From: Phallusia mammillata
Taxonomy: Eukaryota
NCBI GenBank assembly: GCA_965637545.1
Contig: OZ281497.1
Location: 9,362,001-9,426,000, forward strand
Direction of reading: 5' to 3'
DNA: 64,000 nt
Below are positions 1-59,570 of this stretch, one piece after another; within the stretch, counting starts at the first letter, position 1; every line of letters starts with the position of its first letter. Under the pieces are notes generated by a model. It did no database searches. It was given only the letters and a program-made list of their open reading frames with translations, and was not told the origin of the DNA. The position numbers and the translations under genes are program-made.

Positions 1-1286
1 ATTTGGTGAGTGAAATATTTTCTCCCAACTACCCTCAACCTTACCCGAACTCTGCTGACACCGCGTGGTTGGTTCGTGTGTCAGACAATAATGTTGTTCT
101 ACTCAATTTGGTCGATATCGACATCGAGGAATGCTGCGATCGACTCACCATCTACGACGGTAACTCCTTACACGGTCCAGTTATTGCCATTTTATCTGGT
201 ACATTAACCAATCAAAACAATTTGACCATGTACCAGTCCACCGGTAGTAGCATGTCGTTGCATTTGACTTTTGATTGTTCTGAATCAAAAACTGGTTTTA
301 GGGCAAGTGTAAGTAGTTCGGTTGGTGTAATTAGCTCGACAACCGAAACTATTCCCGTTGTAACAACAAATGCTGGGGTTATTACTGATACAACCGGTTC
401 TGGAGATATTGAAACCTGAGGCTATGAAGCTTTGTATTCACAAATAGGTGACTACTATCACTTATCCTCACCAAACTATCCTAACATGTATTACAACAAC
501 ATATATTGTTGGTGGTATATATATCCTGCCGATCAGTCGTTTGATCATTTGATCACATTGCAAGTACTTGATTTCGATTTGGAAGCCAACCATGACAATG
601 TTTATCTGTACAACAAAACTAATCTCCTTGAAACACTAACTAGATCAAATCATAACAACGAACAATTTTATGCAATTGGTTACATGCAAATTAACTTTGT
701 AACTGATGGTTCCGTGACAAGCCGTGGTTTTAACTTTACATATCACCTAGATTCGACTAGCACTGAAGTGTGTAATAATGAATATTTGTATCCACAAATG
801 GGTAACGCTTATTACTTGGCTTCACCAAACTACCCCGACCAGTACTATGATAATGTTGACTGTTGGTGGTATATCTATTCTTATTCTTCCGATCAAGTAA
901 TCACATTGGAAATTATTGATTTTGATATAGAACACGAGTTTGATAACGTTTATCTATACAACCAAAGCGACCTTATTGCAACTTTAACTGGGTCAGATGT
1001 CACAAATGGGCAATTTTTTGCATCGGGGTACATGTTGATTCACTTTGAAAGTGACGGTTCCGTAACGCGAAAGGGTTTTAACTTTACATATAATCTCCAG
1101 TCGACCAACAATGAAACTTGTAGTTCGGAGTGGTTTTATCCACAAGCGGGTCAATACTATTCCTTGTCATCTCCAAACTATCCTGTGCAGTATTATAACA
1201 ATATTTATTGCTTGTGGTATATTTATCCTGATAACAATTATTACAAATTTTTCATTTCACTGGAAATTGTCGATCTCGATTTAGAG

Positions 1287-1503
1287 CAGTGGTCGGCAAC
1301 CGCCGGTCCGCGAGGAGTTCGTTACCGGGCCGCATAATTTTCCAGGATAAATGCTATAAAGCATTTTGCCCATGTATCCCGGGGATGGTAAACTAATTTA
1401 GGCGTTTTCCTTGCTAAATATTTGTAATTTTTTGAAGACTGGTCCGCGATAAAATTTTACTTTCAAAACCGGTCCGCAGTTCAAAAAAGGTTGCCGACCC
1501 CTG
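1287..1503. mobile_element. hAT (Charlie/Buster-type) MITE inserted in a CUB coding exon
   Basis: TIRs CAGTGGTCGGCAACC / GGTTGCCGACCCCTG; perfect 8-bp TSD ATTTAGAG (1279-1286, 1504-1511); removal restores DLDLEYNYDYV. Confidence 0.93.
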
Positions 1504-2028
1504 ATTTAGAGTACAACTATGATTATGTTACCATATTGACGGATAGCGGTGTACTTAACTTTACTGGAAGTAGCTAATCTACAGATCCTATTGTTTCTCA
1601 ACGCATACAAATTAATTTAGTGACTGATTCAATAGAAACAAGGAGGGGCTTTAATTTTGGCTACCAACTTACTCTCCCGCCAGATTGTAACGACACTCAA
1701 TACCTCAGTGCGTTTTCGTCATATGAAAACTTTACATCGATAAACTACCCTTACAGTTATTCAAATAATCTTTGTTCCACTTGGAGCATTCATTCTCCTT
1801 ATGAACATATTATTGAACTGTGCGTTGCTGATATGGATATAGAAGTGTGTTGCGACCATTTGATGGTTTTTGACGGTTCGTCTTTGAGTTATCCACAAAT
1901 TTCGTATGACCACAAGACAGGCTCTTATGTTTATTTTTTGTCAACTAACATGTTTATCGTGTTTACAACAGATTCATCCGTAACTACTACAGGGTTTCAA
2001 ATGTCGTATAGAAGCGTGTATTACCCTC

Positions 2029-2522
2029 CAGGGGTCACCAAACTCCGGCCCGCGAGGTCATTTCGTCCGGCCCGCGACCACATTTTTTAGGTTGCCAAAT
2101 TGTATTAATAACTTTGTAACATTAAAATTTAATCTACTTCTTACAATTTTTTTTCTGTGGGGATATTCAGAATTGATGTTACCGAGTTTCATAGGATTAT
2201 AACACCCAGGATTGATCCAAAGCCACTTTGTTACGTCACAGACAAGACTACAAGTATTAATTGTGCGCAAATAAGTGCCTTCTTTTGTCACTTGTGGCGT
2301 TATATACAAGCATTGCTCGTAAGATGAGACTAATTATACAGTTTAACAGTCGCATGACTACTTTTTGAATGGGATTGTAGAAAGACCATATCTTGGCGCA
2401 CCTAAAAACGCCTCGCGAGCTAAGTTTGGAAAGACGGCGCTAGGGCATGTAAACTATGCGGCCCGCGCGAATCATTATTAGCACTCATCCGGCCCGCAGT
2501 GAAAAAAGTTTGGTGACCCCTG
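2029..2522. mobile_element. hAT MITE
   Basis: TIRs CAGGGGTCACCAAACT / AGTTTGGTGACCCCTG, subterminal GGCCCGC motifs; TSD degenerate; inverted homologue at ~33616-34064. Confidence 0.88.
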
Positions 2523-10800: not shown

Positions 10801-12683
10801 GTTTATGACGAAGTTTTTAAACAACTTTATCATTTAATACCTGGTTTAAAATGTGAAGTCCAAACAGTGTTCCACTGAACTCACGAACACAGGTTTCCAC
10901 GCTTTTCTTAGAATACTTTTGATACTTTTGTCCGTAGTAGATAAAAAGCAGGCCCAGCGCAACCCAAAAAGTTGCCTCTGCCCAAGCGACTACAACCGCA
11001 GCAATCATAAGGCTCCATTCCTCTGCAAGAAAAGCAATGATATTGCATCCAACTTTAGGCACTTGCATTTCAGTTAAATTTATTTTACGTTATTTTACAA
11101 CAACAACAATGAGTCACGCATCATGCAGCTGCTTTCAGGCCCACAAGACTTTGAGCGAAGAAAGCAAGTGTTAAACTGAAAATTGTTTTTTTTTTTGCAT
11201 TTTTGAATTTAAATAAGGCGATGCAGTATAAAATGGATGGAAACATTTGTCGTATATACTGCATAAAACATCACTGAACTTTTGACTATGAAAAGCTTTT
11301 GTGGTGCCCACTTCCCTTGCCACCAGGACGTACTTATTCTTTGTCTATGAATGGGATATATTATTCCAGCATGCGCTACATCCTGTATTTAAGCGTAAAG
11401 GGTTAAACTTCCTAGACCAGTGGTTCCCAACCTTTCGTGGACCATGGCCCCCTCAAAGTAACTTTTTGGCCTCGTGGCCCCCTTCAAGTTACCATGTAGG
11501 ACCTGTGGCCCCCTTAAAATGTAGATAACAATATCGCGTTGGAATGCGGTATTGTTTATGGCCTTAAACAGGCCTAATATAGTAAATGAGAGTGATAAAC
11601 CTCACTATAAACAAATAGTATGTGAAATAGTCGATTAAATTCGGGAATAAAGTTAAAGTGAAAATGACTTTTAGTGGGTGTTTCTTGTGAATATACGTCC
11701 GTGGCCCCCTGGAACACAGCTCGTGGCCCCCCTGGTTGGGAACCACTGTCCTAGACCTTTCAAAATGGTGTTTATGTTCTTTATACTGCGGTACCTTGTT
11801 TAGCACATTGCACAGACCGAATGCTTTGCGTTACACGTTAGCGAAATAACGTGTTTTACATCCAATTGTTGATAATTATTAAACGTTTTCTAAAAGCTGC
11901 ACTTTTACGTTTTAAGTTTGAACAAATAAGAAATTGTCAAATATGTTTTAAATGTTAACCATTCGTTGTCATTTCTTTCTTTACTGTTATGTTTTATCAA
12001 GCTAAAAAAGCAAGGCCTATACTCCCAAACAAACATTAGCCCAATATCGTAGTTTTATAGTTATAAGAAAGGGAAAATATTTTTGCAAGATTTGTACTGC
12101 ATAATAACGATTTTTAGATCAAAATCAAAGTTTTATTTTATACCTAATTACTTCTTAACACAAATACCAATGTGCACAAAAAATACCAACTTGGGTACAT
12201 GTTCAAAAGAACATAGAAGACATAAGCAGCTTCGCTTGTAATAAGGGATTTCTTGGGCCCAAGAAGTCGAATGCAAATTGGGACGGCAAACAAGCTGAAG
12301 AAGATCGAAAATCCATAACTTACAGCTGTAATTTTTGATCCTGAAATGGAAAAAGCGATTGTTTTGTTGTAGAAGATTATATTGCATAACTTATTAATAA
12401 TGAAAAGCATTCATTAATAATAGTTATTTACCAAAAAACATAAAATTCATTTGTTTGAATAAGATTGACTGGAGTGAACTGCACCTTAATAAACATTCAA
12501 AGCAATTGCCTTGGGATACTTACCCAATCCACCAACAATATTCAAACTGGACTGCAGCATAAGCATTGCACTGTAACCGCTAAATACCAACACAACTCCA
12601 AAACATAACAACAAGTAAGTTCTCTTGATGCGTCTTTTCTCCAGCCTAGATTTCTTCTTTGCGATGACGTCTGTCTTTTGCAT
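7806..12683 (-). CDS. UNC93-like MFS membrane protein (UNC93A family), 9 exons
   Basis: GT-AG exons with consistent phases: 12683-12524, 12340-12191, 11022-10841, 10737-10431, 9653-9481, 9255-9091, 8916-8682, 8295-8128, 7879-7806 (last exon least certain). Motifs LQSSLN..GLG, LGPK, NQVFGN, CGANDC, EATRAYASC, GFAIQYGWST.LC...K are typical of UNC93 proteins. Confidence 0.88.
11418..11748. mobile_element. hAT MITE in UNC93-like intron 2
   Basis: TIRs CAGTGGTTCCCAACC / GGTTGGGAACCACTG; TSD TCCTAGAC. Confidence 0.93.
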
Positions 12684-15434: not shown

Positions 15435-17190
15435 TTAGAAGTGAAATCGCTCGGGAGGTTTACGCGATCCCTTCGTTCGTCGTGGATTGTCGGGGCCGAA
15501 TGAAGGAGAGCTACGATTCAGTGGCATGTCTGAATCTGCAATAGCAGTAGGAGCCTGCGGAATACTTTCTTCCGCTCCAGGTTCCAAATCCTCGTCGGAC
15601 GCGTATCGAACGCGTAGGTGGTCGATATGGCGTCTCCAAATTGGACCACGTGGAAGAACTTTAACATGAAAGGTACGACTGCCACACCGTTTGATAATGG
15701 TGGCAGGAACCCAGCGAGCATCCTCGGTACGTCTTAGACCAAGATACAAAGCGTAACATGGGTCTTCAATGTTGAAAGAAGTTAGTGATGTTCACGGGTT
15801 TTCGTGTTCCTTGTACCTGCTTACGTTGCATCAGGTGTGCTGGCGAAGGCAACAGAGTATCTATTTTCGCCCGAATTTGTCTGCCGTTAAGTAGTTCACT
15901 TGGGGAAAATCCACTGGCGTTTGGAATACGCCTGTATTGCAGTAGAAACTCTTGTAACGCTTCTTTAGGAGGTTTAGAAGACTTCTTAAGTGCCTTTTTG
16001 AAAGTTTGCACTAATCGTTCTGCAGCGCCATTTGTAGCAGGAAAGGTAGGGACCTCCGGTCAGATGAACGATGCCCCTTTGTTTACAGAAGTCTTGAAAT
16101 TCGGCAGACATAAAAAGCTTGCGCATTATCGGAAACAATAGTATGAGGGTAACCGAAATGGGCAAAATCTTGTTCCAACAACTCCATAGTTGTTCTCGAT
16201 GACATAGATTGCGTTTGATGTATACAGGGGTATTTTGAGTGAGCATCTATGATCACAAGCCAGTTACTTCCCAGAAAGTTAACTGCGTGATCGATGTGTA
16301 AGCGACTCCATGGCTTTTCCGGCATCATCCACGGATGTACAGGTGCCTTTGGTGGAGCGTTTTGATGTTCAGCACAAGTCTGGCACTTGTGGCAAAGAAC
16401 AGTAATGTCGTCATCGACATTTGGCCAATAGACTGCAGTTCTTGCCAGTTTCTTCATTCGTTGAATCCCAAAATGTCCTTGATGAAGGATCTGGAGAACA
16501 GCAGAACGAAGTGATTCTGGTATAACCAACCGTGAACCATACAGTAGACACCCATAACTGGTACTCAACGAATCCACAACCTTGCAAAACTTTGCAACTG
16601 GATCGTTGTATGCAATAGTAGATGGCCAACCTTCTCTCGTAAAACGCATGACTTTGGATAAGGTTGGATCTTTTCCACTTTCCTTTCGGAGTAACGCCGA
16701 ATCGGTGGGTTGCTAATTGCACAAACAGTGTCGGTGTCATGTGCCCTTTCCTCCCTGTCGAATTCATCCTCCTCACCAATTGGTTTGCAAGCATGTTGTA
16801 ATGGTGCGTCTGCTTGGTTGCTGGCGTTAGATACTACGTTTACTCTATCGTCGGTACGATAAAGTAACTTGTCCAACGATATGCACAACGCCTCGATTCC
16901 GCATCGACCAAGTAGGTTTAAATGCGGCATTTCGAAGACAAACATCGTAAGACTACATGTGGTTATCCTGTATTTGACTTCGAATGCGCCCAGTATCGGC
17001 ACAAGATGTTCCGTTGCAGAGTTGAAACGCTGATTGGTTTCCTTCAAACTCGGTTTCCCAATTTTCTTCCATAAATTTACAGAAATAAAATTTCCGCTTG
17101 TTGCTGTGTCAATCTCTAACAGACAAGCTTTGCCGTTTATGCTGACGGTTACCTCGAGTTTCGGACTGAAATCTGCTTCTGGCTTCATCG
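15435..17190 (-). mobile_element. Ty3/gypsy pol relic: aspartic protease + integrase, frameshifted, RT/RNase H deleted, no LTRs seen
   Basis: LEIDTAT protease motif; H-H-C-C (LHQGHFG..CHKCQTC); PWSRLHIDHA, IVSDNA, NGAAERLVQTFK integrase triad; SPSELLNGR; WRRHIDHLR C-terminus. Confidence 0.92.
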
Positions 17191-21617: not shown

Positions 21618-22140
21618 GCAAATGTAACGTGGCCTATTCCACCACCTGCATTCAATGACGTTCAAAATCTGAAAGTTACTATCATGAACAATGGTGACAC
21701 AGCTGATGACGTTCCCGACTACGCAGAGAGGACGTCATTTACAATGCACACCGAAGAAGTTGCGCACAAGGGAAGAAAAACAACCACAAGGAGGCGCAAA
21801 AGTTGCTCGTCAAGAAAACAACGGTGATCACGTTGCTGCCATGCATTCGGAAAAAACGTTTAGGTCAGCAATTAACTATATATTTTTATCGTTCGATCAT
21901 TTCATCACATTGCAAGTACTTGATTTCGATTTAGAAACCAACTTTGACAAAGTTTATCTGTACAACCAAACTAATCTCATTGACACTCTAACTGGATCAA
22001 ATTTTACCAACAAACAATTTTTAGCAATTGGTTACATGCGAATTAACTTTGTAACTGATGGTTTCGTGACAAGCTGTGTTTTCAACTTTACTTATCACCT
22101 AGATTCGACTAGCACTAAAATGTAATGAATACAAATGGGT
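21618..22140 (+). pseudogene. CUB cluster member B: VIT-exon relic joined to a CUB fragment nearly identical to gene A
   Basis: Acceptor TTTTAG|GCAAATGTAACGTGGCCT (ANVTWPIPPPAFNDVQNLKVTI) with internal deletion and frameshift; 21889-22140 aligns to A 537-802. Confidence 0.85.
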
Positions 22141-23506: not shown

Positions 23507-26500
23507 TTATGGGAAAGGACTTCCATGCACCGATACACTCAAATAATAGTTCGCATTGAAACCTTTATCAGTAATACCACTACTGGTTGAAAATCTTAAC
23601 CAAAGGTCGTAACCAACACGCTGAAAATAACGACCCGATGGAAAAGTACCAGAGAATTCTTCCTTAACTTTGTCACCCGAATATAAAGTCAAAATGTCGG
23701 AACTCTGTTGAGTAGAAAAGTCATTAAAATCTAGCACTATGTCATTGTAATCCCCATCAAAGAACCAACATTCGTTAAAGTTATTCGAATAATCTTCGGG
23801 ATAATTGTGTGACGTAATAGTGCCGTTTGCAGTGATGTTTATGTTATGGATCAGTGAACAGTTATGGTCGTAAGGCGGCGTAGGGTAATCTTCAGTTGCA
23901 GAATACTGAAATTGAAAACCTATGTTGGGAAAGTTACTGTGAGCGTGAAAGTTTATAAACATAGAATAACGTGAGTACAGTGGCGATTCATAATCGTCAT
24001 TGGTAAATCTTGAAAGGAAAGGATAGTAGTTGTTGGGTCCTGCGTACACGTCAATGTAATCATCATCTGACAACTCTAAGTCAAGTACCACAAGCATGAC
24101 ATGGTAGCCGTTATGGCTGTTAATGGTCCAGCTGCAGACAATATTGCTATAGTAGCGCTGTGGGTAGTTTGGCGAAGTAAAATTGGCAGAACCCGAATAT
24201 ATGTCAAGCGTTTTACCATCAGTGTCAGTGCAGGCTTGGTGGGTTGGAGCCGCTTTTAGGAGGAACAGAAAACCATTGCTAACTTCAGAATAGTCCGAAC
24301 GGAATTCCAGTTGCATTTGTGATGTGCTGCTTATATATTTACTCGGGTAGTTTACACTTCGCTCTATAAAACCCAAGATTTCAGACGAATCCCATCCGTC
24401 ATAGAAATACACATTATCGTATTTGGCAAGTCTGGCATCATTCACTTGCAGCTCTACGCCATAACCTGGTAACGTAGTCGACACATACCAATTGCATTGC
24501 ATCTGATTCTCGTAGAAACTTGGATAATTAGGCGAGGATATGTAGGTATAGTTATAAGCATCGACTGTGAGATACAATCCAGAAGTACATGCTGCAGTGG
24601 AGTTGTTATTAATATGGTCTTCGTAACTGGGAACAGTTTGGTTGGTGCTGTTCACACTTCTGTATATAAGCTGGAATCCACGATATGTATGTGATAAATC
24701 TGATGTAAACCGTATCAGCATGTCAGATCCCGTGGAGTACACATGAGAGCCAATTTCCAATGCATAAGGTATTTGTTTTTGATAAAAGGAAGGACCGTCG
24801 AAAAAGACCAGGAAGTCGCAGCATATGTCAACACTGAAATCAGCAAGGTATACCTCTATTACTTGTCCAACATATGATGAATGAATGGTCCAAGTGCAGT
24901 ACATATTGTTTACGTAGTGGTAAGGGTAATCAAAGGAAGTTATATTGTTGTAAAAAGTTTTGGCATCCAAGTATTTAGTCCCGTTGCAGCTCGGGTTTAA
25001 AACAGGTTCGTATTGGATATTAAAGCCACGTCGGGCAACAGAACTGTCACTAACAAAGTATATCGATAAATAAGTGAAATATATAATTTCTTTAGGATAA
25101 GTATTGCCCGTAATGTTTGCTACGAGATCTGAATTGTCGTAGAATAGAATATAATCATAGCCGTTTTCCAAATCTAGGTCCAAAATTTTTAAGGAAAGGG
25201 ACTGTACTCGAGTATCAGGCACCCATATATTCCACGAACAGTTTGCGTTATTGTAGTAGTCATTAGGATAATTAGGCGATGTGAGATAGTAAACTGTGCC
25301 CAGTTCGGTTGTCACTCTTTCATTGTAGCTGCAAGTTGAATTGACAATAGGTGTTGTAACGATATTTTGGGTTGTGGTTTTAAAAGTAACGTTAACAAAT
25401 TCGGTTGTGCTTGCAATTACACCAGCAGTTGTTTCACTCGGTAGAGGTTTTGCTGTTGTCGAGGCAATCACACCAACTGTTGTAGTTGCTCTAAATCCAG
25501 TTTTTGATTCTGAACAATCAGAAGTCAGATGCAAAGACATACTACTTCCGGTGGACTGGTACATGGTCAAATTGTTCTGATTGGTTAATGTACCAGATAA
25601 AATGGCAATCACTTGACCGTCAAACGAATTACCGTCATAGATGGTGAGTCGGTCGCAGCATTCCTCGATGTCGATATCGACGATATTGAGTTGAACCACT
25701 TTATCTTCAGGCACACGAACCAGCCACGCGATGTCAGCAGAGTTCGGGTAGGGTTGAGGATAGTTGGGAGAAAATATTTCACCCACCAAATTCTGAACAG
25801 TGGAACCATAAAGATCGAAAAGCACCTGGGCTTTGTTTTGTATCTTCACACCTGAGTCGATCATGTCTTGCACGGTTTCCTTGTACTCGATGTTGAAGGT
25901 GACCTCTTTGTTGCCTTTAATGTGGGCCGTGTTCTTTGCAGTTTGAAGATGCAAATCGTACATATCTGCAAAATATTATAGATAATGGTTGTTTTGTTTT
26001 GTTTTTTTGTAAAAGGGGAAAATTTTGGTTTGTGCTTCAATTGAAAGACAGGTATAACTGTATGCAGTAGGCCTGCATTGTTTAATCAAGAGTCACCAGA
26101 TATATACTTAGGACAACAGTTGCGTACAATAAAAGACACTTTGGTAAGTCTCAAGTGATCCACTATTTGTTTATGATAAGTTATACATATTCGAACCACG
26201 TATATTTTTTCTAAACCGTTTGTTTACGCCAGTGATTCTGAAACTTTTTAAGCTGAAACTTTTTAAGCATGCAGCGCATTAAAAAAAACTAAAAACGTGG
26301 CACACTTCGCAGGTAAACATAACAAAAGTTGTTCAAAAATGGCACTTTTCAACTTTATTGTGATGGCAAAAGATGCTGATGGCAAAAGATGCATTACCAA
26401 TAACCAAAATATGAGCTTTGTAATGTGCAACAGTATTTTTTCATAAAGTCCTAAAACACCAGGTATGTTTGCAATTTAAAATAGGGAGTATTTTGCGGCG

Positions 26501-27905
26501 CATACTTGGAAATCTCTCACGGCACACAGCTTGATTACTGCTTTAGTTTTAACGTTGTGTACTATTCTTAAGCGGTGTTTGTTACTAAATACCGAACGTG
26601 CAAAAAATGTAGGCGAAACATAGTTAGCCTATATATATCATGAATAAAATGGTGAAAGACTTTAGACTTGTGAATGTTTTTATTATGGGTGGCGAGTGAG
26701 TGTATTACAATTTTACATTAAAGAGCTGAGCTTGAAACGAAAGTAATATTTACCTTGCAAAGGTTCTGGTGAATGAACAGCAGCCACATGATCTCCATTT
26801 CTAGCTTTATCAAGCACCTTTTGAGCCTCCTTGTGGTCGGTTTTTCTTCCCTCGTACGCGACTCCTTGCGTGTGCATAATAAATGACGTCATTTCAGCGT
26901 AATCGGGGAGAAAGGTTTGAAATCTTACATCATCAGCAGTGTCGCCGAAGTTTTTGATGGTGACCTTCAAATTCTGAAGGTCGTTGAATTTTGGAGGAGG
27001 TAATGGCCACATGACGTTCGCCTGGTAATGCAAATCACTTGCGTTACTATTTTATATGCTTTTGCTCTATTACAAAAAATATTTCCCTATACTAGAGCTG
27101 GGCTACTCTACCTGTGTATGCGCTATAGGCAGAGTTGCCATCGACATGGACCCCAAAACAAGGACAACCAATTAAGAGATGAAATTTTCTTACGAAACGA
27201 AACAAACGCTTTTGAACAAATCATTGCATTTTTACGAACCATGACATATCACATGCTATATTTTTTGCCAGAAACAATCTGTTCCCGCAACTCCTTGTTT
27301 GAAACAAATACCCCGTGTCCGTGCCTCTCACAGCACCTCAAGTCTAGGTTTACTTTCACTTGTAGCAGGAATTTGACAGGTAATTGTTTGAAATGAAACA
27401 AAATAAGGACTCAAGTCAAAAAACAAGGTCATTTCTTAGAAATTAGGTATGTTAAACGTGGACATAGGCCAATATTAGATTATTTTGGGGAACATTTTCT
27501 TCTACTGATGGAAAAAGTTTAAGCCTTTAATTAAACTTAGATTCATAGCGGTATTAAGAAATGTTTTAAATGTCTATTTAATAATGCCACCACCCAATGC
27601 TCAGTCATTCCTCAAAGAGTCCTGTCTAGGTTTTTATATTTTTTATTTTCTACACGGAACTGCATTTATAGTATACTGTTGATTTTAATTTACATTTAAA
27701 TTGTTATTTTTTTATAAGAATAAAAAAGTCACGTGCCGAAAATTAGAAATAAAAACAGAATATAGGCTATAGATTGCCCAACCTTTTTGTACACTGGAGA
27801 GGGAAGAAGGCCAATAACGAAAGCTTCATCTTGGTTTGCTCCATCGCCAAATTTTAATAAAACTAAAAGCAGTAGCACTATAAAGGAATATTTTAAACAA
27901 AACAT
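23507..27905 (-). CDS. CUB cluster member C: secreted signal peptide-VIT-6xCUB protein (~949 aa)
   Basis: Exons 27905-27783 (41 codons, hydrophobic signal), 27021-26754 (268 nt, VIT core), 25965-23507 (VIT end, CUB1, Thr-rich linker, CUB2-6); GT-AG, phases 0 and 1 splice in frame; no TM segment. Confidence 0.88.
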
Positions 27906-29622: not shown

Positions 29623-30804
29623 ATGCTCCATTTCAACATTCTTGCTTCAATGCTTTTGCTTTGGACCATTGTCAACTTAGGAAATGCAGTTCCCTACCAC
29701 GGAGCTTTAGTTGTTAAATCAGTCAGTCCCAATCCAATTACGGACACAACTTCTTTGACTGACAATCAAGTATGTGGTTATCAAACTTTGGAAGCGCAAA
29801 AAGGTCATCATTATTACTTGACTTCTCCAAACTACCCTGAGCAATATAGCAACGATCTTAGTTGTTTGTGGTTTATTTATTCTTCTTCACCCCAAGAACT
29901 GATTACTTTACAAGTTGTTGATTTTGAAACGGAAAATAAATGGGATAGTGTTTCACTGTATAACGATACTGGTGAAATTACCACTCTGTCTGGGTCAGTT
30001 TCAACAAACAAACAATTCATTGGAACAGGTTACATTTCTGTTAACTTTGTCACTGACGAGTCTGGGACAGCTAGAGGATTTAACCTCACCTATCAAGTTG
30101 GACCAGTTGAAACGTGCGATTTTGAACATTTGTATCCAGACATGGGAAGTCATTATTTTTTGTCCTCTCCCAATTATCCATACCAGTATTACAATAATAT
30201 TGATTGCTGGTGGCATATATACGCAGTTTCTTTAACCCAACAGTTTATTGCTTTGCATATTCTTGATTTCGAACTACAGTACTATGACTCAGTTTACCTG
30301 TATAACCAAAATGAACGTATTGCAACCCTTTACGGAAATACTCTCGAAACCAAAGAATTTTCTGCAATGGGATACATGGGTGTTAACTTCAAAACTGACA
30401 ATTCTGTAACGAATAAAGGCTTCAACTTTACGTATGAAGTATTTTTGTCCCCAGTATGCAATCAAACTGAATATTTGTATTCATATTATGCAAACTATAA
30501 CAACCTAACATCGATAAATTACCCCAACAACTATCCAAATGCCCTATGTACCACATGGAGCATTCACTCTGTATTTTATGGTTATATAATTGAACTTTAT
30601 GTTGCTGATTTTGATATTGAAAAATGTTGTGACTACCTCGAATTTTTCGACGGCCCAACTTCAAATTACCCGAAAATTCAATTTCAACCCCAAACAAGTT
30701 CGTACGTTAGTTCGACATCAACTGACATGTTTATTGTATTTTTTACCGATGATTCCGTATCTCACAAAGGCTTTCAGTTAATGTATCGCAGTGTACAGCC
30801 ATGA
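29623..30804 (+). CDS. CUB cluster member D: secreted signal peptide-3xCUB protein, single coding exon
   Basis: 393-aa ORF; signal MLHFNILASMLLLWTIVNLGNA; three CUBs (two type 2, one type 3); AATAAA right after the stop. Confidence 0.92.
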   Translation: MLHFNILASMLLLWTIVNLGNAVPYHGALVVKSVSPNPITDTTSLTDNQVCGYQTLEAQKGHHYYLTSPNYPEQYSNDLSCLWFIYSSSPQELITLQVVDFETENKWDSVSLYNDTGEITTLSGSVSTNKQFIGTGYISVNFVTDESGTARGFNLTYQVGPVETCDFEHLYPDMGSHYFLSSPNYPYQYYNNIDCWWHIYAVSLTQQFIALHILDFELQYYDSVYLYNQNERIATLYGNTLETKEFSAMGYMGVNFKTDNSVTNKGFNFTYEVFLSPVCNQTEYLYSYYANYNNLTSINYPNNYPNALCTTWSIHSVFYGYIIELYVADFDIEKCCDYLEFFDGPTSNYPKIQFQPQTSSYVSSTSTDMFIVFFTDDSVSHKGFQLMYRSVQP

Positions 30805-35640: not shown

Positions 35641-35970
35641 CGCTTTTACGATGTTGAAGGTATAAAGAGTTCAATTAGGTATAGCCTATATTATTGCCGA
35701 GAAAGTTAAGAATATTAAAAAAAATATTTGCTTGTAGCTAACCAAATAATAACGTGTGAAAAGAAACGGAATAATGCTGGCTAAGGACATGACTGAGGAC
35801 AGTATCAAAGATAAACTTTTAAGACCCTTTGCCTTATCGACTTAGAAGTATTGACTATAGTTTAAAAAAAATGTAAGAAAAAATAACTGTAGAGCGTTCT
35901 TCGTCCTTAGAAATTTGGATTTTTTGCAGACAATTTTAATTGCAAAACTGCTTTTTACTATCGACATACG

Positions 35971-38900
35971 ATGGCTTGTAACAAAACTGATACTTTGCTC
36001 ATTTTTCTGACAATTCTTGCACCGTTGGGATATGCTGTGAATAAAGACCAATCATTTGTAGTTGGACTTCTTCCTAGACCAGTATACGAAAAGGTAAATT
36101 CAATAAAATATTTTGGGAAATGGCCTTTCACAGATTTTGTTTCTTATTTGGATCTAGGCAAATGTCACTTGGCCAATTCCCGCACCAGCATTCAATGGCC
36201 TTCAAAATCTGAAGGTCACTATTAAAAACTTCGGTGACATAGCTGATGACGTCGGATTTCACACTTACCTTCCTGACTACGCAGAGATGACGTCGTTTAC
36301 AATGCACACAGACGGAGTTGCGTACACAGGAAGAAAAACTGATCGCATGGAAGCGCAGGAGATAATCGACAAAGCGAAAAAGGGCGACCATGTGGTGCAA
36401 TGCTTTTTCCTAAACGTTTAACAGGTAAATTGAACATTGGGAATCGTGCTTAAGTTTTTAAATACAACGACCAAGTACTTGTATTAATATACGTTGTTTT
36501 TCCAAAACCTGTTTCTGCACAATATATTTTTTGAGTTTGTACTGTTTATTTTAAAAGGAACCATGGGCATCATAAACGAATTTAGAAAAATTGGTAAAAA
36601 AAACATTCTTTGAGGCTTAGCTGAAATAATGGTTTCGACCTTTTAGGGTGGGTTGGATGCTATCACTAGACATAAAAGTGCGTCATACTCATACAGGAAC
36701 ATGGGTGGCCATGGGTGTAGGTAGTAGCCGGACTGATATTTATTCGAGCCGGGTTGATATTTGAGTTTAAACAAACATTGTGTTTTGCCACATAACCTTC
36801 TTTCGAGTTGTAACTTCATGCGTTTTTAGACCTAAATGACTTGCAACTCCCAACTGAAAAAAATATCCACATCAAGGGCAACAAAGAAGTCATCTTTAAC
36901 ATCGAGTACAAAGAAACCGTGAAAGACAGGATCGACTCCGGTGTGAAGATACAGAACAGAGCTTATGTGCTTCTTGATCTTTATGGTTCCACTGTTAAGA
37001 ATTTGGTGGGTGAGATATTTTCTCCCAAGTATCCTCAACCCTACCCGAACTCTGCTGACATCGCTTGGTTGGTTCGTGTGCCTTACGATAAAGTGGTTCA
37101 ACTCAATATCGTCGATATCGACATCGAGGAATGCTGCGACCGACTCACCATCTATGACGGCAACTCTATGACCGATCCAGCAATTGTTATTTTATCTGGT
37201 TCTTTGGCCAATCAGAACATGTTGACGTACCAGTCCACCAGCAGTAGTATGATGTTGCATTTTACTTCTGATTGTTCCGAATCGAATACTGGATTTAGGG
37301 TAATAACTTCAGTGGGTGTAACTGGTTATAAAGCAGAAAACCCACATGTGGCAACAACAACTTCTGGTGTAGTTACTGATGAGTCAACTCCTTATCCAGT
37401 AAACAATGGAAACTGTTCTGAATATGGCAAATCTTTGGACCCATTGCCAGGAAAGTACTACTATCTTTCATCACCAAACTACCCTGGCCAGTATTATAAC
37501 GATATTTCTTGCTGGTGGTATATATATCTCAGTTACCCACGCTTTTTTGTATCAATTGAAGTTCTTGATCTCGATTTAGAAAGCGGCCATGATTATGTGT
37601 CAATATCGAATAGAAGTGGTTTGATGGCCAACTTGACTGGTTCAAAGTTTTCAAAGAAACCAATCAATGCGACTTACTATGTTGATATCCGCTTACATAC
37701 AGATTCATCAGTGACGAAAAGAGGTTTTAATTTTCGGTACAAACTTATTCCGTTTCCAAGATGCAACGGGACTCAACATTTGGATGCTGATTCAAACTAT
37801 CAAAGCATTACATCGCTGAACTATCCAGGAAGTTACTACGACGCTCTTTATTGCACCTGGAGCATTACTTCCGTGTACTCAGATTCTGTGGTGGAAGTTT
37901 TCATTGCTGATTATGCCATCGAGCCAAACTACGACTTCTTATTATTCTATGATGGTCCTTCCCAATATTACGCACAAATTGACTACAAACACCAAACCGG
38001 ATCATTTATTTACTCAACAACATCAAATATGTTTGTTACTTTTGTTACTGATTACAGTAAAACTCATAAAGGGTTTCGAATCATGTATAGGGGAGTACAG
38101 AGTTCAAACCAGACTTCTCCCAGTTATAACGATCCGTCTGCCAACAACCCCGATATTGCATGCCCTTCAGGGCTATATCTCTCTGTCGACCCTTATACCT
38201 ACAATTATATAACCTCGCCTAACTATCCAAGCTTGTATGACAACAACTCAACCTGCACATGGTATATTGAGACAAAATATGCTGGATACAGTATTGAGAT
38301 AGACGTTAACGATGCACGTTTTAACCAATTTGATCGGGTCATTTTTTACTCCGATTGGAACACCCCCTACTACTGGGGTTATTTCGATGGGTATAACTCC
38401 TTTTATGGCAAACTTTTTATTAATTCCGGACAAGCAAAAGTGACGTTTATCTCCGATAAATCTCTCAGAGAAAAGGGATTTTTGTTTCTTGTGAAAGCGG
38501 TTCCTCAACTTCCTGCCTGTCCATATGGTGAAACTCTGGACATACATTCTGGTTCATCTATTCTTACTTCACCCAACTACCCTTACCCTTACTACAGCAA
38601 TATGGACTGTAGTTGGACAGTACAAAGCCCCAGCGATCTATACATTATGGTAAACATACTTTACTTCGATTTAAACCAGGCTTATCTTTATATATACGAC
38701 GGGCCTACTATTAAATACCCATGGATCGCCAATTTCTATGAAACTTTATATCACACTCCGATTTATTCTAGCGGTTCTATAATGTTGTTTAAATTTAAAT
38801 CATGGAATACCGGAATCGGTTTTAAACTTCAGTACTCAACGATAAATAATCGCACAAATGACGAACATGAATCACAGAACAACTGTACTCTGATACACCA

Positions 38901-39213
38901 CCTTTCCAACACCAACGGCACAATTACTTCAAGTAATTATCCTGACTATTACCCCAACAACATGATTGAATGTTGGATTTTCGGTCTAAAGCACAACGCA
39001 TTGGAGCTTATATTTAAAGATTTTGACACCGAATATTATTCGGATCGCTTGAAACTTTACAACAGCAAGCAAGAAACTGAAGTCTTCTTCGGTTGGGTGC
39101 GTCCCAGTTACCCGTATACGTACTATGGGTACAACTTGTGGCTTCAATTCACCACTGACAACCAAACTTCGTACAACAAAGGTTTTGAGATCAACTATGT
39201 TTTGTTGACATAA
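35971..39213 (+). pseudogene. CUB cluster member E: signal peptide-VIT-6xCUB gene with a 1-nt deletion in exon 2 (null allele or sequence error)
   Basis: Exons 35971-36093, 36158-36424, 36830-39213. Exon 2 is 267 nt vs 268 in C; CATGTGG-TGCAATG lacks the C of GCT, giving in-frame TAA at 36419-36421. Exon 3 is fully open. Confidence 0.8.
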
Positions 39214-41955: not shown

Positions 41956-43476
41956 ATGGCTTGTGTCAAAGTTGTTACTGTACTTATTCTACTGACAACT
42001 CTTGCAACGTTGGGAAATGCCAGATGCAACGGGACTCAATATTTGGATGCTGATTCAAACTATCAAAGTATTACATCGATGAACTATCCAGAGAACTACT
42101 ACGACGCCCTTTATTGCACCTGGAGCATTACTTCAGTTTATCCGGGTTCTGTGGTGGAAATTTACATTGCTGATTTTGGCGTTGAGCCAACCTTTGACTT
42201 TTTAGTTTTCTATGATGGTCCTTCCCAATATTTTGCTCAAATTGACTACAAACACGAATCCGGTTCCTTTATTTACTCAACAACACCAAATATGTTTGTT
42301 ACGTTTGTTACTGATTATTACATGACTTCCAGAGGATTTCGAATTGTATACAGGGCTGTACAAAGTTCAAACCAGACTTCTCCCAGTTATAACGACCCAT
42401 CTGCGAACAACCCCGATATTACATGCACTTCAGGACTATATCTCTCTGTCGACCCATATACATACAGTTATATAACCTCGCCTAACTATCCAAGCCTGTA
42501 TAACAACAATTCAACCTGCACATGGTATATTGACACGAAATATGCTGGATATGGTATTGAGATACAAATTAACGATGCACATTTTAACAACTATGATAGC
42601 GTCAGTTTTTACGACGGCTGGAATGCAACCTACTTTTGGAACTATATTGATGGTCATAGCCCCTTTTATGGCAAAGTATTTCTTCGCTCGGGACAAGCAA
42701 AAGTGAAGTTTATCACAGATAAAACTCTCGTAGAAAGAGGATTTTTGTTTCTTGTGAAAGCCGTTCCACAACTGCCGGCCTGTCCCTTTGGCGAAACTCT
42801 TGACATACATTCTGGATCAGCTATTCTTACTTCACCCAACTACCCCTACCCTTACTACAGTAATATGGAGTGCAGTTGGATAATACAAAGCCCCGACGAC
42901 CAATACATTATGCTCAATATAATTTACTTTAACTTGAAAAATGCCAACCTTAATATCTATGATGGACCGTCTTTGAGATATCCGAGGATCGCAAGTTTTC
43001 AGGAAACTATATATGAGTCTCCGATTTATTCTAGTGGTCCTAAAATGTTGGTCTTGTTTAACGCATGGAAAACCGGTATTGGTTTTGAACTTGAGTATTC
43101 AGCGACAAGCAACCGTATCATTGTGGAATCCGAATTGCAAAACAACTGTACTCTGACACATTACCTTTCCAGTGTCAATGGCACAATCACTTCCAATAAT
43201 TATCCTGACTATTACCCCAACAACATGATTGAATGCTGGATTTTTGATCAAACGTATAGTGCAATGAATCTTAAATTTAATGATTTTGACACCGATTATT
43301 ATTCGGATAGTTTGAAACTTTATAACAGCAAGGAAGTAGTTCAAGTCTTTTTCGGTAATGCGAATTCTGGTTACTCATATACGTACTATGGGTACAACTT
43401 GTGGTTTCAGTTCACCACCGATAGCCAGGCTTCTAACAAAAAAGGCTTTGAGACAAACTACATTTTGTTGACATAA
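41956..43476 (+). CDS. CUB cluster member F: secreted signal peptide-4xCUB (types 3-6), deletion derivative of E
   Basis: ATG 41956 (MACVKVV..LGNA) joined directly to RCNGTQYLDADSNYQSITS; colinear and highly similar to E 37758-39213 through the stop. Confidence 0.92.
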   Translation: MACVKVVTVLILLTTLATLGNARCNGTQYLDADSNYQSITSMNYPENYYDALYCTWSITSVYPGSVVEIYIADFGVEPTFDFLVFYDGPSQYFAQIDYKHESGSFIYSTTPNMFVTFVTDYYMTSRGFRIVYRAVQSSNQTSPSYNDPSANNPDITCTSGLYLSVDPYTYSYITSPNYPSLYNNNSTCTWYIDTKYAGYGIEIQINDAHFNNYDSVSFYDGWNATYFWNYIDGHSPFYGKVFLRSGQAKVKFITDKTLVERGFLFLVKAVPQLPACPFGETLDIHSGSAILTSPNYPYPYYSNMECSWIIQSPDDQYIMLNIIYFNLKNANLNIYDGPSLRYPRIASFQETIYESPIYSSGPKMLVLFNAWKTGIGFELEYSATSNRIIVESELQNNCTLTHYLSSVNGTITSNNYPDYYPNNMIECWIFDQTYSAMNLKFNDFDTDYYSDSLKLYNSKEVVQVFFGNANSGYSYTYYGYNLWFQFTTDSQASNKKGFETNYILLT

Positions 43477-46304: not shown

Positions 46305-47537
46305 TCAAGATGCCCCATTTGTTTGGTTTTCAATGGCTGAGAATTGAAATTTGAAACCAGTGCCGGGGTTCTTGCTCCATGAGAAGAACTTGATGAACAT
46401 GTAGTCGCCAGTAGAATACAAAGGAGACTGAAATGCATTGCCACCGAAGCCAGCAAGCAGTGGGTAATTTTCTCCAGCCCCGTCATATATATACACGTTG
46501 TCTTCATTCAAATCTAAGTCCTCTACGGCAAGCTTTATCTTATAGCCGTTTTGGCAATGTATTGTCCACATGCAGATTTCATTGCTGTAGTAAGTATGTG
46601 GGTAGTTTGGGGTAGTAAGTGTAGCAGAACCAGAACCAATATCAAGACTTTCACCTGCTGCGCAAGCTGGAAGTTTTGGAACAGCTTTTACAAGAAGCAA
46701 GAAACCTGTATCACTAGTAGCAGCATCAGAAACAAACCTTATTTTTGTTTCACCAGTGTTGTCGTGGATTTTACCGTAAACCAAAAAATCTTGTGTTAAT
46801 CTGATTGGATAATTGTTCCAGCCTTCGTGTATGTACAAGGTATCGTCATTTGGTCCAATGCGTAAATCGTTAATTTGTATCTCAATACCATAACCTGTAT
46901 AGCCCGTCTTAATAAACCATGTACAGGATAAGCCGTTGCCATAATTGTTAGCGTAATTTGGTGAAGATATATAAGTGTAGCTATTTGGGTCGACTGTAAG
47001 ATATAACCCTGAAGCACAAGCGACGGTTGAGTTGTTGGCTAAAGGATCTTCGTAAATGGGAAGGGGTTTGTTTGATTTTAACATACTTCGGTATTTAAGC
47101 CTGAATCCTTGACTGGTTCCCGACCCGTCAGTGACGAACATAATAAACATGTCCGAGGATTTTGAAAAAATATAAGAACCAGTTTCTGGATCCACGGGAA
47201 TTTGTTCGTAATATTGTGAAGGTCCGTCAAAGAAAACCAAAAAGTCACAGCAGAGTTGGTAGTTTAAATCTTCAATGGAAACTTCAATTACATGGCCCTC
47301 ATCCACAGAATGGATGCTCCAGGTGCAGAAAAGATTATTAGTGTACGCGTTGGGATAGTTGATAGATGTGAAGCTGTTATACGATGATTCAGCATTCAAA
47401 TGTTGAGTTCCTTCGCAACTTTGTGGCGAAGTTTGTTGACTTCCAGCAGCATCAGTTTCGTCGCCTTGCGCGTGCACATTCGCTACAAGAGTTGTTTGCA
47501 ATAAAAGCATCAAAGCAACGAACTTTAAACAAGCCAT
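46305..47537 (-). CDS. CUB cluster member G: secreted signal peptide-3xCUB (types 3-5)
   Basis: Likely ATG 47537 (MACLKFVALMLLLQTTLVANVHA; same ACGATGGCTTGT context as E/F); three CUBs. Confidence 0.92.
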   Translation of the reverse strand: MACLKFVALMLLLQTTLVANVHAQGDETDAAGSQQTSPQSCEGTQHLNAESSYNSFTSINYPNAYTNNLFCTWSIHSVDEGHVIEVSIEDLNYQLCCDFLVFFDGPSQYYEQIPVDPETGSYIFSKSSDMFIMFVTDGSGTSQGFRLKYRSMLKSNKPLPIYEDPLANNSTVACASGLYLTVDPNSYTYISSPNYANNYGNGLSCTWFIKTGYTGYGIEIQINDLRIGPNDDTLYIHEGWNNYPIRLTQDFLVYGKIHDNTGETKIRFVSDAATSDTGFLLLVKAVPKLPACAAGESLDIGSGSATLTTPNYPHTYYSNEICMWTIHCQNGYKIKLAVEDLDLNEDNVYIYDGAGENYPLLAGFGGNAFQSPLYSTGDYMFIKFFSWSKNPGTGFKFQFSAIENQTNGAS

Positions 47538-53064: not shown

Positions 53065-55600
53065 TCACAATACGCTTCTATACATTAACCAAAAACCTTG
53101 GAAGACTTTCATTCCATCACTTGTAAAAACTATAAACATGTCAGCCCATGTGGACTTAACAGAAGTCCCTTCTATGGGAATGAATGAAATAGGTGGAAAG
53201 TTCGACGATGGGCCGTCGTAAATAGTCAAAAAGTCTAAATAATCCACAAAGTAATCAGCAACGTACACTTCAACTACGTAACCAAAATACATAGAATGGA
53301 TGCTCCAAGTACAGTAAAGATTATCGAAATAATAGTAAGGGTAGTTTAAAGATGTTAAGTTGTTGTAATTCAGATCAGCTTCTAAAAACTCAGTTTCGCC
53401 GCAGCTCGGTGACAGAATCGTGGTGTAAGTAAACTTAAAACCTCTGCCAGTTCCTGAGCTACCAGTTACAAAGTTGATGTCAAGATACCCGGCTACTGTA
53501 ACGTATGTTTGGTCAGTAAAATCAATTCCACTAAATCTTATTGATAATCTTCCGCTACTTATTGTCACAGAATCGGTCTCTAAATCAAGATCTACTACCT
53601 GCAAGGCAATCGACTCGCCTGTAGTAGTAGCCCGTATATACCACCAACAAAACAAATTATTGTCATACTGATTGGGATAATTTGGTGAAGTTAAATAATA
53701 TTGTTCACCTAGCACTGGATAGAAAGTTTCATAGTTACATGCGTTTTTAACTGCGTAATCGCTTTGATCAGGGATATTTTTTGCTGTTAAACCACTTACA
53801 ACAACCGAAGTTATTGCTCTAAATCCAGTTTTTGATACGGAACAATCAGAAGTCAAATGTATCAACAAACTACTTTTGGTCGACTGGAACATGGTCAAAT
53901 TGTTCTGATTGGTTAATGTACCAGATAAAATGGCAATTACTGGGACGTTGATAGAGTTGCCGTCGTAGATGGTGAGTCGGTCGCAGCATTCCTCGATGTC
54001 GATATCGACGATATTGAGTTGAACTACTTTATCGTCAGGCACACGAAGCAACCACGCGATGTCAGCAGAGTTAGGATAGGGTTGAGGATAGTTGGGAGAA
54101 AATATCTCACCCACCAAATCCTGAACAGTGGTGCCGGAAAGATCAAGTAGCACCTGAGCTCTGTTTTGTATCTTCACATCGGAGTCGATCATGTCTTGCA
54201 CGGTTTCTTTGTACTCGATGTTGAAGGTGACTTCTTTTTTGCCTTTAATGTGGACTGTGTTTTTCGATGATTGAATATCCTGATAAAAATTTTCTGAAAA
54301 AAAAGTAAACTAACTTTACTCCTACTTTTTAGCATTATGATAACCATCCATTGAAATCACCAAGTTATTATCAAGTCATTTTATTTGTTCTTTGAAACAG
54401 TCGAAACAGATTTTGTGCAGCCACATTAAACTAACTTATATAAACAACGAAAAAGTTTTTGGCCATTTGCTATCAATTTACCGTTTTTCTCGCCTACAAA
54501 TTCTTGAAGATGCATAGCAGCCAAGAAATCGCCCCTTCTTGCCTTTTCATACACTTGTAGTGCTTTTTTGTAGTTGGTTTTTATCCCTTCGTACGCTACC
54601 CCATCTAAGTGCATTACAAACGACGTAATAGCTGCATTGTCGGAAAAGTAAGTGTGAAATCCAATGTCAGCTGGGGTTGCTTTGGTGTTCTTAATAGTGA
54701 CCTTCAAAGTTTGAAGATCGTCGGACGCGTGAATGGGCCAGGGGATATTTGCCTGTTACGAAAAAAGTTTGATTTTTAACTTTTTAAACTATTCTACTAA
54801 ACCAGGAATATCATAAACATAACACAGTTAAGAGCTAAAAAATTCATCACCGATCTGCACGGTATGAAAAGACGCCGTACTGTTGGGTTTTATTTGATTG
54901 GCGGGCATTGGTTCGCACAATTCTGAAACAATTGTACTGGTTGTAACCAAATCGCCGGTAAAAGCCGATGAGTTACACCAAATGTAGTTGCTAACTTTTA
55001 AGGAGCAATTAAATCAGCCAGAAGTTCAAGTCACGTTAATCTTATTGAGAGAAATCAATTCGTGACTGAAAGGGAAACCAAAACGATCACATCTGAGCAA
55101 ATAATATGATAAGGAAAAAATGGTCTGTTACGAGACATCTTCGAAAACTGGTGTTTTGCCATTGGTTGCATACATTAAAAAAACGAGAATGGAAAATTAA
55201 AGAAGGTTTTCATATAAAGATCCAAATCGCCATACGCGGCAAATATCAGCATCAATATTTTTCATTTTGAAACAACAGTAACAAAATACTTCAAATTTGC
55301 CTTTCATTTTAAAACTTTGATATATTCATAGGCCCCTTAGAATTTTATAGGCTATAGTGTGGTGTATGGGTTTCACACCCTTCTCTTTAGCTTAAAGTAA
55401 AAAGAAATTTCAAACAAACCCACGCAAAAAACTAACTTTTCGATAGGAACCTTAAAGTATAACTTATAGCTTACTTTTTCATAAATTGGTTGGGGTAAAA
55501 GTCCAACGATAAAAGCTTCGTTTTCGTCAAATGCATTGCCCATCCTGACAAAAGTCAAGAAAAGAAACATAAAGCCAATCAAAAGCTGGTAACAAATCAT
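53065..55600 (-). CDS. CUB cluster member H: secreted signal peptide-VIT-3xCUB protein (~541 aa)
   Basis: Exons 55600-55475 (42 codons), 54752-54482 (271 nt), 54293-53065; GT-AG, same phases as C; reading frame open. Confidence 0.88.
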
Positions 55601-57968: not shown

Positions 57969-59570
57969 TTACGGCTTTGCAGAGTACTGAAATTGAAAGC
58001 CAATCCCTGCATAACTACTGCCATGTGTTTGTGTATCGAACACAATGTACATGTAATAAGCAGTAGAATACAAGGGCGAAACGTAAGTGTTTCCCCGAAA
58101 ACTGGCAAGTTGTGAGTAGCTGCTTGAATCTCCGTCATATATGTACACATAGTCGTAATTTATATCTAAATCTAGCACAGTCAACATAATCAAAGAGCCC
58201 CAGAAACTACGAATGGTCCATGTGCATTCTATATTACTGTAGTAACCGTTAGGGTAGTTTGGCGATGCAAAAGAGACTGGGTCGCCGTAAAGGGATAGAT
58301 ATTCACCTGTGTTAGCGCACGCAGGTTCTATCGGCACTGCCCTTACAAGAAACAAAAACCCACGGTCTGTAGATGCATTATCGCTGAGAAAAGTTATTCG
58401 AGTTTGCTCAGGGTTCACAAACAAACGCCCAAAATAATCGGTATCATAATCAATCGTTGCGACGGGGGAAGTTGAGTTGGATCCTCCATACAAAGAAACT
58501 ACATCACCTTGGCCCAGACGGACGTCGTTAACTTGTATTTCATAACCAAACCCACTATAGGAAATATCGATGTACCATGTACAAGATAAATCATTGAAGT
58601 ACGATGTTGGATAGTTAGGCGAAGACACCTCGGTGTAAGTGTAAGGATCGACGTTTATTGTTATACCTGATGTACATGGGTCTTCAGAACTTCCCAAAGA
58701 AGGATCATTGTAGATAGGCGACAAAACACTCTTGTACAAAAGCTGAAACCCTCTTCCTGTACCAGTATGTCCAGGATCAGAAGTAAATTGTATGAACATG
58801 TTAGAAGCCGTTGAATGAACGTATGTACCTGATTCCATTGAATATGGTATTTGTTTATAATTCCAAGAATTGCCATCATAGAATACAAGGAAGTCACCAC
58901 CAGATGGTAGTTCCATATCATCAATGAAGATTTCAACTACATATGCAGAATAAGAAGACTGAATGCTCCAGGTACAGTAGAGATCGAAATAGTATTGATC
59001 AGGATAATTCAAAGACGTGATGCTGTTATAAGACGAATGGGCTACAAGATATTCAGTATCGCCACATTGCGGTGTAGGTATCATTTGGTATTGGAACTTA
59101 AACCCACGACCGGCTTTGGACGAATCAGTTATGAAGTTAATATAGAGGTACACTAACCCAATAATCGGCTTTTCAGAGAAGGTTGATCCAGTCAATTCGG
59201 TATGGCGACCCATTTCATCGTAGATCTCAACAAAATCATAACCCACTTCTAGATCGAGGTCCACAACTTGCAACGTAACAATATTTTCGGGATATTCTGA
59301 GAAAATCCACCATCGGCAGTTAATGTTGTTGTAATACTGTTCTGGATAGTTCGGAGATGAAAGATAATAATATTTTTCTGCAGATGGATATATTAATTCG
59401 GAATCACTGCAGTTTCCATCGCTGAGCGGAAAAGGCATGTCATTAAAAAGAGCTGTGAATTCTTTTGAACCCATTCCTGTATTCTTTAGACTTTCTTCAT
59501 TCGCCGCTGCCTTAAGGTCAAAGAAGGCCAGCAGCAATGCAAGTGAAGTTAGAATTCTAAAACAAGACAT
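57969..59570 (-). CDS. CUB cluster member I: secreted signal peptide-4xCUB (types 2-5)
   Basis: ATG 59570 (MSCFRILTSLALLLAFFDLKAAA); four CUBs; single coding exon; TATAAATA at 59744-59737. Confidence 0.92.
   Translation of the reverse strand: MSCFRILTSLALLLAFFDLKAAANEESLKNTGMGSKEFTALFNDMPFPLSDGNCSDSELIYPSAEKYYYLSSPNYPEQYYNNINCRWWIFSEYPENIVTLQVVDLDLEVGYDFVEIYDEMGRHTELTGSTFSEKPIIGLVYLYINFITDSSKAGRGFKFQYQMIPTPQCGDTEYLVAHSSYNSITSLNYPDQYYFDLYCTWSIQSSYSAYVVEIFIDDMELPSGGDFLVFYDGNSWNYKQIPYSMESGTYVHSTASNMFIQFTSDPGHTGTGRGFQLLYKSVLSPIYNDPSLGSSEDPCTSGITINVDPYTYTEVSSPNYPTSYFNDLSCTWYIDISYSGFGYEIQVNDVRLGQGDVVSLYGGSNSTSPVATIDYDTDYFGRLFVNPEQTRITFLSDNASTDRGFLFLVRAVPIEPACANTGEYLSLYGDPVSFASPNYPNGYYSNIECTWTIRSFWGSLIMLTVLDLDINYDYVYIYDGDSSSYSQLASFRGNTYVSPLYSTAYYMYIVFDTQTHGSSYAGIGFQFQYSAKP

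Follow-up and report, generated by a model that had tools for sequence, protein, structure and literature searches.

A VIT domain joined to CUB arrays in an ascidian multigene family of predicted secreted proteins

VIT domains are found in ITIH heavy chains, PARP4 and VWA5. In PARP4, VWA5A/B and bacterial VIT-vWA proteins, the VIT is followed by a vWA domain and there is no CUB domain; to our knowledge, the VIT itself has no assigned function. As some bacterial VIT proteins lack the vWA, a VIT without vWA is not, on its own, unprecedented. Here we analyze a gene in a stretch of 64,000 nucleotides (nt) of Phallusia mammillata DNA (“the window”, to which all positions refer) that joins a VIT to a row of CUBs. 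This gene, paralog D, is intact and belongs to a multigene family of ascidians whose products consist of a predicted signal peptide, a VIT, an atypical first CUB (CUB1), a Ser/Thr-rich linker and one to seven ordinary CUBs. What is new is the arrangement of two known domains; the sequences have already been deposited, under wrong names.

Gene D lies on the minus strand and has three exons (27905-27783, 27021-26754 and 25965-23507), with a GT donor and an AG acceptor at every junction, intron phases 0 and 1, and zero internal stops. The exons contribute 41 + 89 + 1 + 818 = 949 codons, for a predicted protein of 949 amino acids (aa) in which a signal peptide is followed by the VIT and six CUBs, as a previous, sequence-only reading of the window had proposed. 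Exon 1 (27783..27905, 123 nt, phase 0) encodes the signal peptide, about 23 aa long by eye, and a conserved motif, EAFVIGLLPSPVY, that is also kept in Ciona, Clavelina and metagenome loci. Exon 2 (26754..27021, 268 nt, entered in phase 0 and left in phase 1) holds the VIT core (Pfam PF08487 positions 19-83). Exon 3 starts with the final VIT strands (HIKGNKEVTFNIEYKETV) and a short linker (25844..25965) and continues with CUB1 (25469..25843), which lacks the first disulfide, carries an E/D/D Ca2+ triad (IEECCD...SDCS) together with a vicinal CC and a third cysteine, and is homogenised among paralogs. A Ser/Thr-rich linker recognized from the translation (25340..25468), little conserved between paralogs and likely O-glycosylated, leads to CUB2-CUB6 and the stop codon (23507..25339), which were placed by profile matches and sequence. 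Pfam CUB (PF00431) identifies six domains in exon 3 (E 1e-83). Their Ca2+ residues are intact in CUB1 and CUB2, near-intact in CUB3 (D for E) and eroded in CUB4-6.

A hydrophobic N-terminus, read by eye as a signal peptide, is common to all family members. In the gene D protein, there is no membrane helix: hydropathy over 19 residues peaks at 1.56, within a CUB, and the C-terminus is polar. The predicted splicing of gene D is supported by gene models of Ciona and Clavelina, which have the same intron positions and phases. High-copy repeats are present in both introns (27072-27450 and 26252-26580), with a depth in DNA runs hundreds of times that of single-copy sequence. Two read sets, other than the RNA-labelled runs discussed below, were rejected as RNA for gene D, since they cover the introns and are therefore DNA-like. 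The allele differences listed for gene D from DNA runs (149 others come besides) comprise 15 synonymous and 10 non-synonymous codon changes, and none creates a stop.

The assignment of the N-terminal domain to the VIT family, made previously by inspection of conserved spacing, agrees with the profile searches. Exons were searched singly, and natural full-length orthologs stood in for folding and whole-protein searches. Taken by itself, exon 2 matches Pfam VIT (E 9.4e-6; 26.2 bits, where the cut-off is 26.5) over positions 19-83 of the 111 in the profile, a partial match because the remaining VIT sequence sits in exon 3. Scores are 28.8 bits for paralog H (described below) and 26.6-47.2 bits for full-length homologs, and 17 of the 25 alignment members match the profile; its first strand (positions 1-15) is unmatched in the family. 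Among solved structures, the only ones matched by a profile of the family VIT region are ITIH4 (residues 52-151, E 5.5e-9) and ITIH1 (residues 59-159, E 4.5e-6). The similarity to ITIH1 stops near residue 159, and CUB1 begins directly after. No vWA match was obtained in any tested family member, and the sole DxSxS sits in the CUB1 Ca loop, so that the earlier statement that neither a vWA nor a MIDAS (for metal ion-dependent adhesion site) follows the VIT still stands.

In ITIH1, the VIT residues form no separate domain, but are part of a 16-stranded sandwich termed Hybrid2 (residues 45-265 and 601-652; PMC7170535). In the VIT-CUB family, for which the Ciona ortholog was modelled, the VIT, unlike in ITIH1, models as a compact domain by itself. 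AlphaFold predictions for the Ciona VIT alone reach a predicted local distance difference test (pLDDT) score of 86.6 and a predicted template modelling (pTM) score of 0.80, and in the Ciona models the conserved exon-1 motif forms a strand (E5-10) of the VIT module. Between paralogs D and E, the VIT exon is 76% identical in amino acids with only 42% identity at four-fold sites, which speaks for purifying selection. EphA2 and the poliovirus receptor, which appeared as structural relatives in single-sequence PDB searches, are chance matches only, and the candidate family members P0018, P0020 and P0022 were dropped as Ig-like or other repeat proteins without VIT or CUB match.

The conserved unit of the family is the VIT plus the atypical CUB1. 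CUB1 is present in every VIT gene with a readable exon 3 and absent from all four VIT-less neighbours. Moreover, whether taken from the window, from Ciona, from Clavelina or from either of two metagenome hosts, CUB1 falls into a single clade (100/94), separate from all tail CUBs; the row E_c6 in this tree is a pattern artefact. In fold, CUB1 matches PCPE-1, TSG-6, neuropilin and cubilin with Z ~13 and a root-mean-square deviation (rmsd) of 1.7-2.2. CUB1 never has the Cys1/Cys2 pair of the first disulfide, retains E-x-CC-D...D, and within its D-C-S calcium loop bears, in most members, a third cysteine. In the TSG-6 CUB, the calcium site is made up of Glu183, Asp191 and Asp232 together with D-x-S carbonyls (PMC4661386). 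The CUB1 calcium triad aligns with those of cubilin and C1s, and a metal site is predicted from this sequence agreement. As tail CUBs have the vicinal CC without a third cysteine, the third cysteine of CUB1 may be unpaired. For the Ciona VIT and CUB1 together, AlphaFold gives a pLDDT of 85.6 and a pTM of 0.84.

In the data reached, the family is ascidian-wide and not confined to P. mammillata. Ciona intestinalis XP_026689840 is a natural full-length VIT-CUB protein with 52% identity over exon 2, and further full-length proteins are found in C. savignyi (H2YDJ1) and Clavelina lepadiformis (XP_076808192/94/95, XP_076809594 and XP_076803384). The ascidian orthologs are the same in architecture, exon layout and atypical CUB1, and both intron positions and phases are kept in Ciona, Clavelina and two metagenome hosts. 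Their tail CUBs vary in sequence and in number, from about two to seven. Clavelina has four copies within 25 kb at one locus, three at a second and one at a third; one metagenome host has at least five VIT-CUB paralogs, some of them broken. Paralogs mostly cluster by species, with weak tree support. Short marine metagenome contigs, including one from Tara, carry a more divergent exon 2 that likewise ends in phase 1 and may stem from a pelagic tunicate. The named true matches are all ascidian, although the search was not highly sensitive, recovering no ITIH at E 1e-3, and may have missed distant cases. The ESM Atlas contains no VIT-CUB cluster, which is uninformative for small clusters. The three-gene cluster of Clavelina adjoins an LBP/BPI gene, possibly by chance, since the neighbours differ at other loci. 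Two RefSeq models (XP_076808194/95) combine exons 2-3 of one copy with the first exon of a tandem copy that lies 21 kb away, and another protein from a Clavelina locus (P0031) fuses two copies; these are probably mis-models.

Entries for the family in RefSeq and UniProt are automatically named “cubilin-like”, “DMBT1-like” or “tolloid-like”, yet contain VIT and CUB only. These names are wrong, because EGF, SRCR, ZP, astacin and NTR domains are absent. The suggestion of a lineage-specific secreted family thus holds as far as restriction to ascidians is concerned, in the data reached, but the proteins were in the databases all along. In the literature searched, which covered few subscription papers, we found no paper on a VIT-CUB family or citing six of its accessions, in line with the impression that no such family had been characterised.

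The window contains other members of the family and derivatives of them. Paralog H (53065..55600, minus strand) is intact, with three CUBs and three exons (55600-55475, 126 nt, phase 0; 54752-54482, 271 nt, phase 1; 54293-53065, open). Just downstream of H, an intact open reading frame (ORF) of 1026 aa (49492-52572, plus strand) encodes, judging by its translation, an endonuclease and reverse transcriptase resembling those of long interspersed nuclear elements. Paralog E (35971..39213, plus strand; exons 35971-36093, 36158-36424 and 36830-39213) has a VIT and six CUBs. Up to the homologous donor (36424), its exon 2 spans 267 nt and contains an in-frame TAA, while exon 3 has a phase-1 acceptor, so that in this assembly E carries a frameshift close to where exon 2 ends. 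The sequence-only reading had ascribed the layout and phases of D to both E and H, which is correct for H, but not for E. The VIT exon that it had seen in relic B (21618..22131, plus strand) is present, in broken form, and is followed by a CUB2-type fragment. Of paralog A, the window includes the 3' part (1..2090, plus strand), with the atypical CUB1 and, in broken frames, more CUBs; VIT exons, if there are any, would be located upstream of the window.

The VIT-less genes are each made of a single exon. F (41956..43476, plus strand) is a derivative of E in which the signal peptide is joined in frame to CUB3-6: the signal-peptide stretch of E (35914-36035) matches 41897-42020, and its CUB3-6 stretch (37759-39393) matches 42022-43659. 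E is frameshifted while its derivative F is intact, which amounts to birth and death inside one tandem pair. An unlettered gene (29623..30804, plus strand) and G (46305..47537, minus strand) encode a signal peptide and three CUBs, and I (57969..59570, minus strand) a signal peptide and four CUBs, all without VIT and CUB1. Among paralogs D, E, H and A, a tract of 400-500 nt that comprises the VIT end and CUB1 is 84-87% identical across four copies (25448-25957, 36838-37340, 53777-54278 and 1-396), compared with about 55% for the tail CUBs. At four-fold sites, D, E and H are 76-82% identical in CUB1, 37-42% in exon 2 and 0-46% in the tail CUBs. Such homogenisation of CUB1 relative to exon 2 and the tail suggests gene conversion of the VIT-end/CUB1 segment within the window. 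Elsewhere in the window are an intronless archease (60865-61332, plus strand; Pfam E 9e-43), a WD40 gene that by eye resembles TAF5 (62378-63530, minus strand), exons that by eye are UNC-93-like (10399-12410, minus strand), and broken ORFs whose translation is reminiscent of a Gypsy-type integrase/protease relic (15435-17188, minus strand).

No recognised catalytic domain and no membrane anchor occur in the VIT-CUB family. We favor a model, to which we give about an even chance of being right, in which the gene D product is a secreted, non-enzymatic, Ca2+-dependent adaptor that acts in matrix, mucus or haemolymph and combines a constant VIT-CUB1 head with a variable, multivalent CUB tail. The VIT and CUB1 would pack as one constant head, which could use the CUB1 calcium site to bind a conserved self partner, be it matrix, mucus or a further copy of the head, and the spare cysteine beside this site would possibly lock the binding. 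The fast-diverging CUB tail, variable in number, would bind varied ligands in a multivalent way. An ITIH-type gene in an ascidian ancestor is the probable donor of the VIT, which may have become self-folding with the help of the exon-1 strand. The family as a whole appears to evolve through tandem duplication, through gene conversion of the segment that covers the VIT end and CUB1, and through recurrent loss of the entire head.

A bolder version of the adaptor model can be formulated, which we put forward tentatively and consider unlikely as it stands. Ascidians would have carved the VIT from the ITIH Hybrid2 and, by adding a novel strand from exon 1 and a CUB with remodelled disulfides, turned it into a new rigid two-domain module. 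This module would serve as a constant effector or oligomerisation head, perhaps covalent via the spare cysteine and kept uniform by gene conversion, on variable CUB arrays. If this were true, the family would be a secreted recognition system with constant and variable parts, and its naturally stand-alone VIT would reveal what the domain does.

Several observations speak against the adaptor model or weaken its foundations. None of the runs that contain gene D is registered as RNA, and in two RNA-labelled runs of the species, reads fall only on repeats in the introns and the 3' flank, and none on gene D exons, although the missing coverage does not speak for a silent gene D. The intact VIT-less genes show that the VIT-CUB1 head can be lost. 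In Clavelina, one member (P0017) is without all three CUB1 cysteines and another (P0030) without the third. A rigid VIT-CUB1 head is consistent with pTM and co-inheritance, the only two indications of an interface. The family alignment is shallow, with 25-30 rows, many of them fragments. Finally, the structural comparison with ITIH1 that had been proposed as a check gave a divided result. ITIH1 takes ranks 1-3 in Foldseek searches with the Ciona VIT model, but the top match is weak (probability 0.99, E 0.036, template modelling score 0.40), and VIA comparison of the model with ITIH1 yields a Z of 3.1-3.2, not above background, with an rmsd of 4.1 over 91-95 residues. The VIT homology therefore rests on sequence; the VIT shape may be repacked relative to ITIH1, or the model may be imperfect.

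On a more modest explanation, the VIT may be an inert cap or folding aid that replaces the lost N-terminal disulfide of CUB1, with all binding done by the CUBs, in what would then be, functionally, an ordinary secreted multi-CUB protein. We regard this as possible, though doubtful. CUB1 is without Cys1/Cys2 whenever a VIT is attached, the VIT (30-55% identical between species) is less conserved than CUB1, and the same cluster includes four VIT-less genes that are intact. However, Ciona, Clavelina and other hosts have kept the VIT, and purifying selection acts on it. Moreover, CUBs without the first disulfide fold uncapped elsewhere: the CUB1 of C1s lacks this bridge and starts at the same point. 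The absence of any VIT-specific activity from the description of the ITIH1 structure (PMC7170535) fits an inert VIT.

Alternatively, the VIT could retain the MIDAS-independent matrix binding of ITIH (to fibronectin, vitronectin and latent TGF-beta complexes), and either cross-link these ligands to CUB partners or compete with the animal's own ITIH. HC1 still binds vitronectin and fibronectin when the whole vWA is removed (PMC7170535), and the VIT is part of the Hybrid2 that remains in this vWA-less HC1. We hold retained matrix binding to be improbable, however: the binding site in HC1 has not been mapped to the VIT, only about 110 of some 330 Hybrid2 residues are matched (structural identity below 20%), and the model differs from ITIH1 in shape. 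We also see only a slight chance that the family encodes gamete-coat or allorecognition proteins (egg coat, follicle cell or sperm surface ligands) with specificity residing in the variable CUB tails. CUB arrays do occur in echinoderm EBR1 and ascidian ovochymase/acrosin (PMC9265791), and the birth-and-death turnover of the family would suit such a role, but neither the VIT nor the VIT-CUB family is mentioned in that review (PMC9265791), and the allelic differences look purifying rather than hypervariable. That the protein is a one-chain ITIH/TSG-6 equivalent transferring itself onto glycosaminoglycan is almost certainly wrong: an ITIH-derived domain is indeed combined with TSG-6-like CUBs of the Ca2+-binding type, but for this reaction the MIDAS of the heavy chain is required, as are TSG-6 Ser28, the Link module and an ester at the heavy-chain C-terminal Asp (PMC4661386). 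The domain content of gene D, without vWA, MIDAS and Link module, contradicts it, and the looser analogy with the ITIH-TSG-6 partnership drawn previously fails as well, since that contact, too, depends on the heavy-chain MIDAS (PMC4661386, PMC7170535), which the family lacks.

Whatever the VIT-CUB proteins do, a conserved natural VIT without vWA provides a small, expressible handle on the role of this domain, in the tractable model Ciona. Several wrong database names are put right by the family, which also offers a clear example of domain shuffling from the vertebrates' sister group. At present, it is one among many ascidian lineage-specific mosaic secreted proteins.

In comparison with known systems, the gene D product belongs to none of the ITIH, cubilin, DMBT1, tolloid and TSG-6 types, whose defining domains it lacks. 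With the ITIH heavy chains (ITIH1, PDB 6FPY; ITIH4, PDB 9C4F) the family shares an N-terminal VIT and, by prediction, secretion. The heavy chains, however, have the vWA with its MIDAS, Hybrid1 and the rest of the 16-stranded Hybrid2; in the VIT-CUB family, a complete Hybrid1/Hybrid2 and the ITI C-terminal region were not encountered, and CUBs follow directly after the VIT. PARP4, VWA5A/B and the bacterial VIT-vWA proteins (TIGR03788) resemble the family in the VIT, and one Clavelina member weakly matches TIGR03788 (E 0.003). The likeness to TSG-6 lies in a Ca2+-type CUB with an E/D/D site; TSG-6, however, has a Link module, for which the gene D exons gave no match, and contacts ITIH via the MIDAS, and the VIT-CUB family is without either. 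Tandem CUBs, several with the Ca2+ triad, connect the family to cubilin, DMBT1, tolloid/BMP1 and PCPE-1, where the best structural matches lie (Z ~13). Profile searches of the gene D exons and homologs gave no EGF repeats, no SRCR and ZP domains and no astacin protease, and NTR is likewise absent. What sets the family apart from all of these CUB proteins is its N-terminal VIT with the atypical CUB1.

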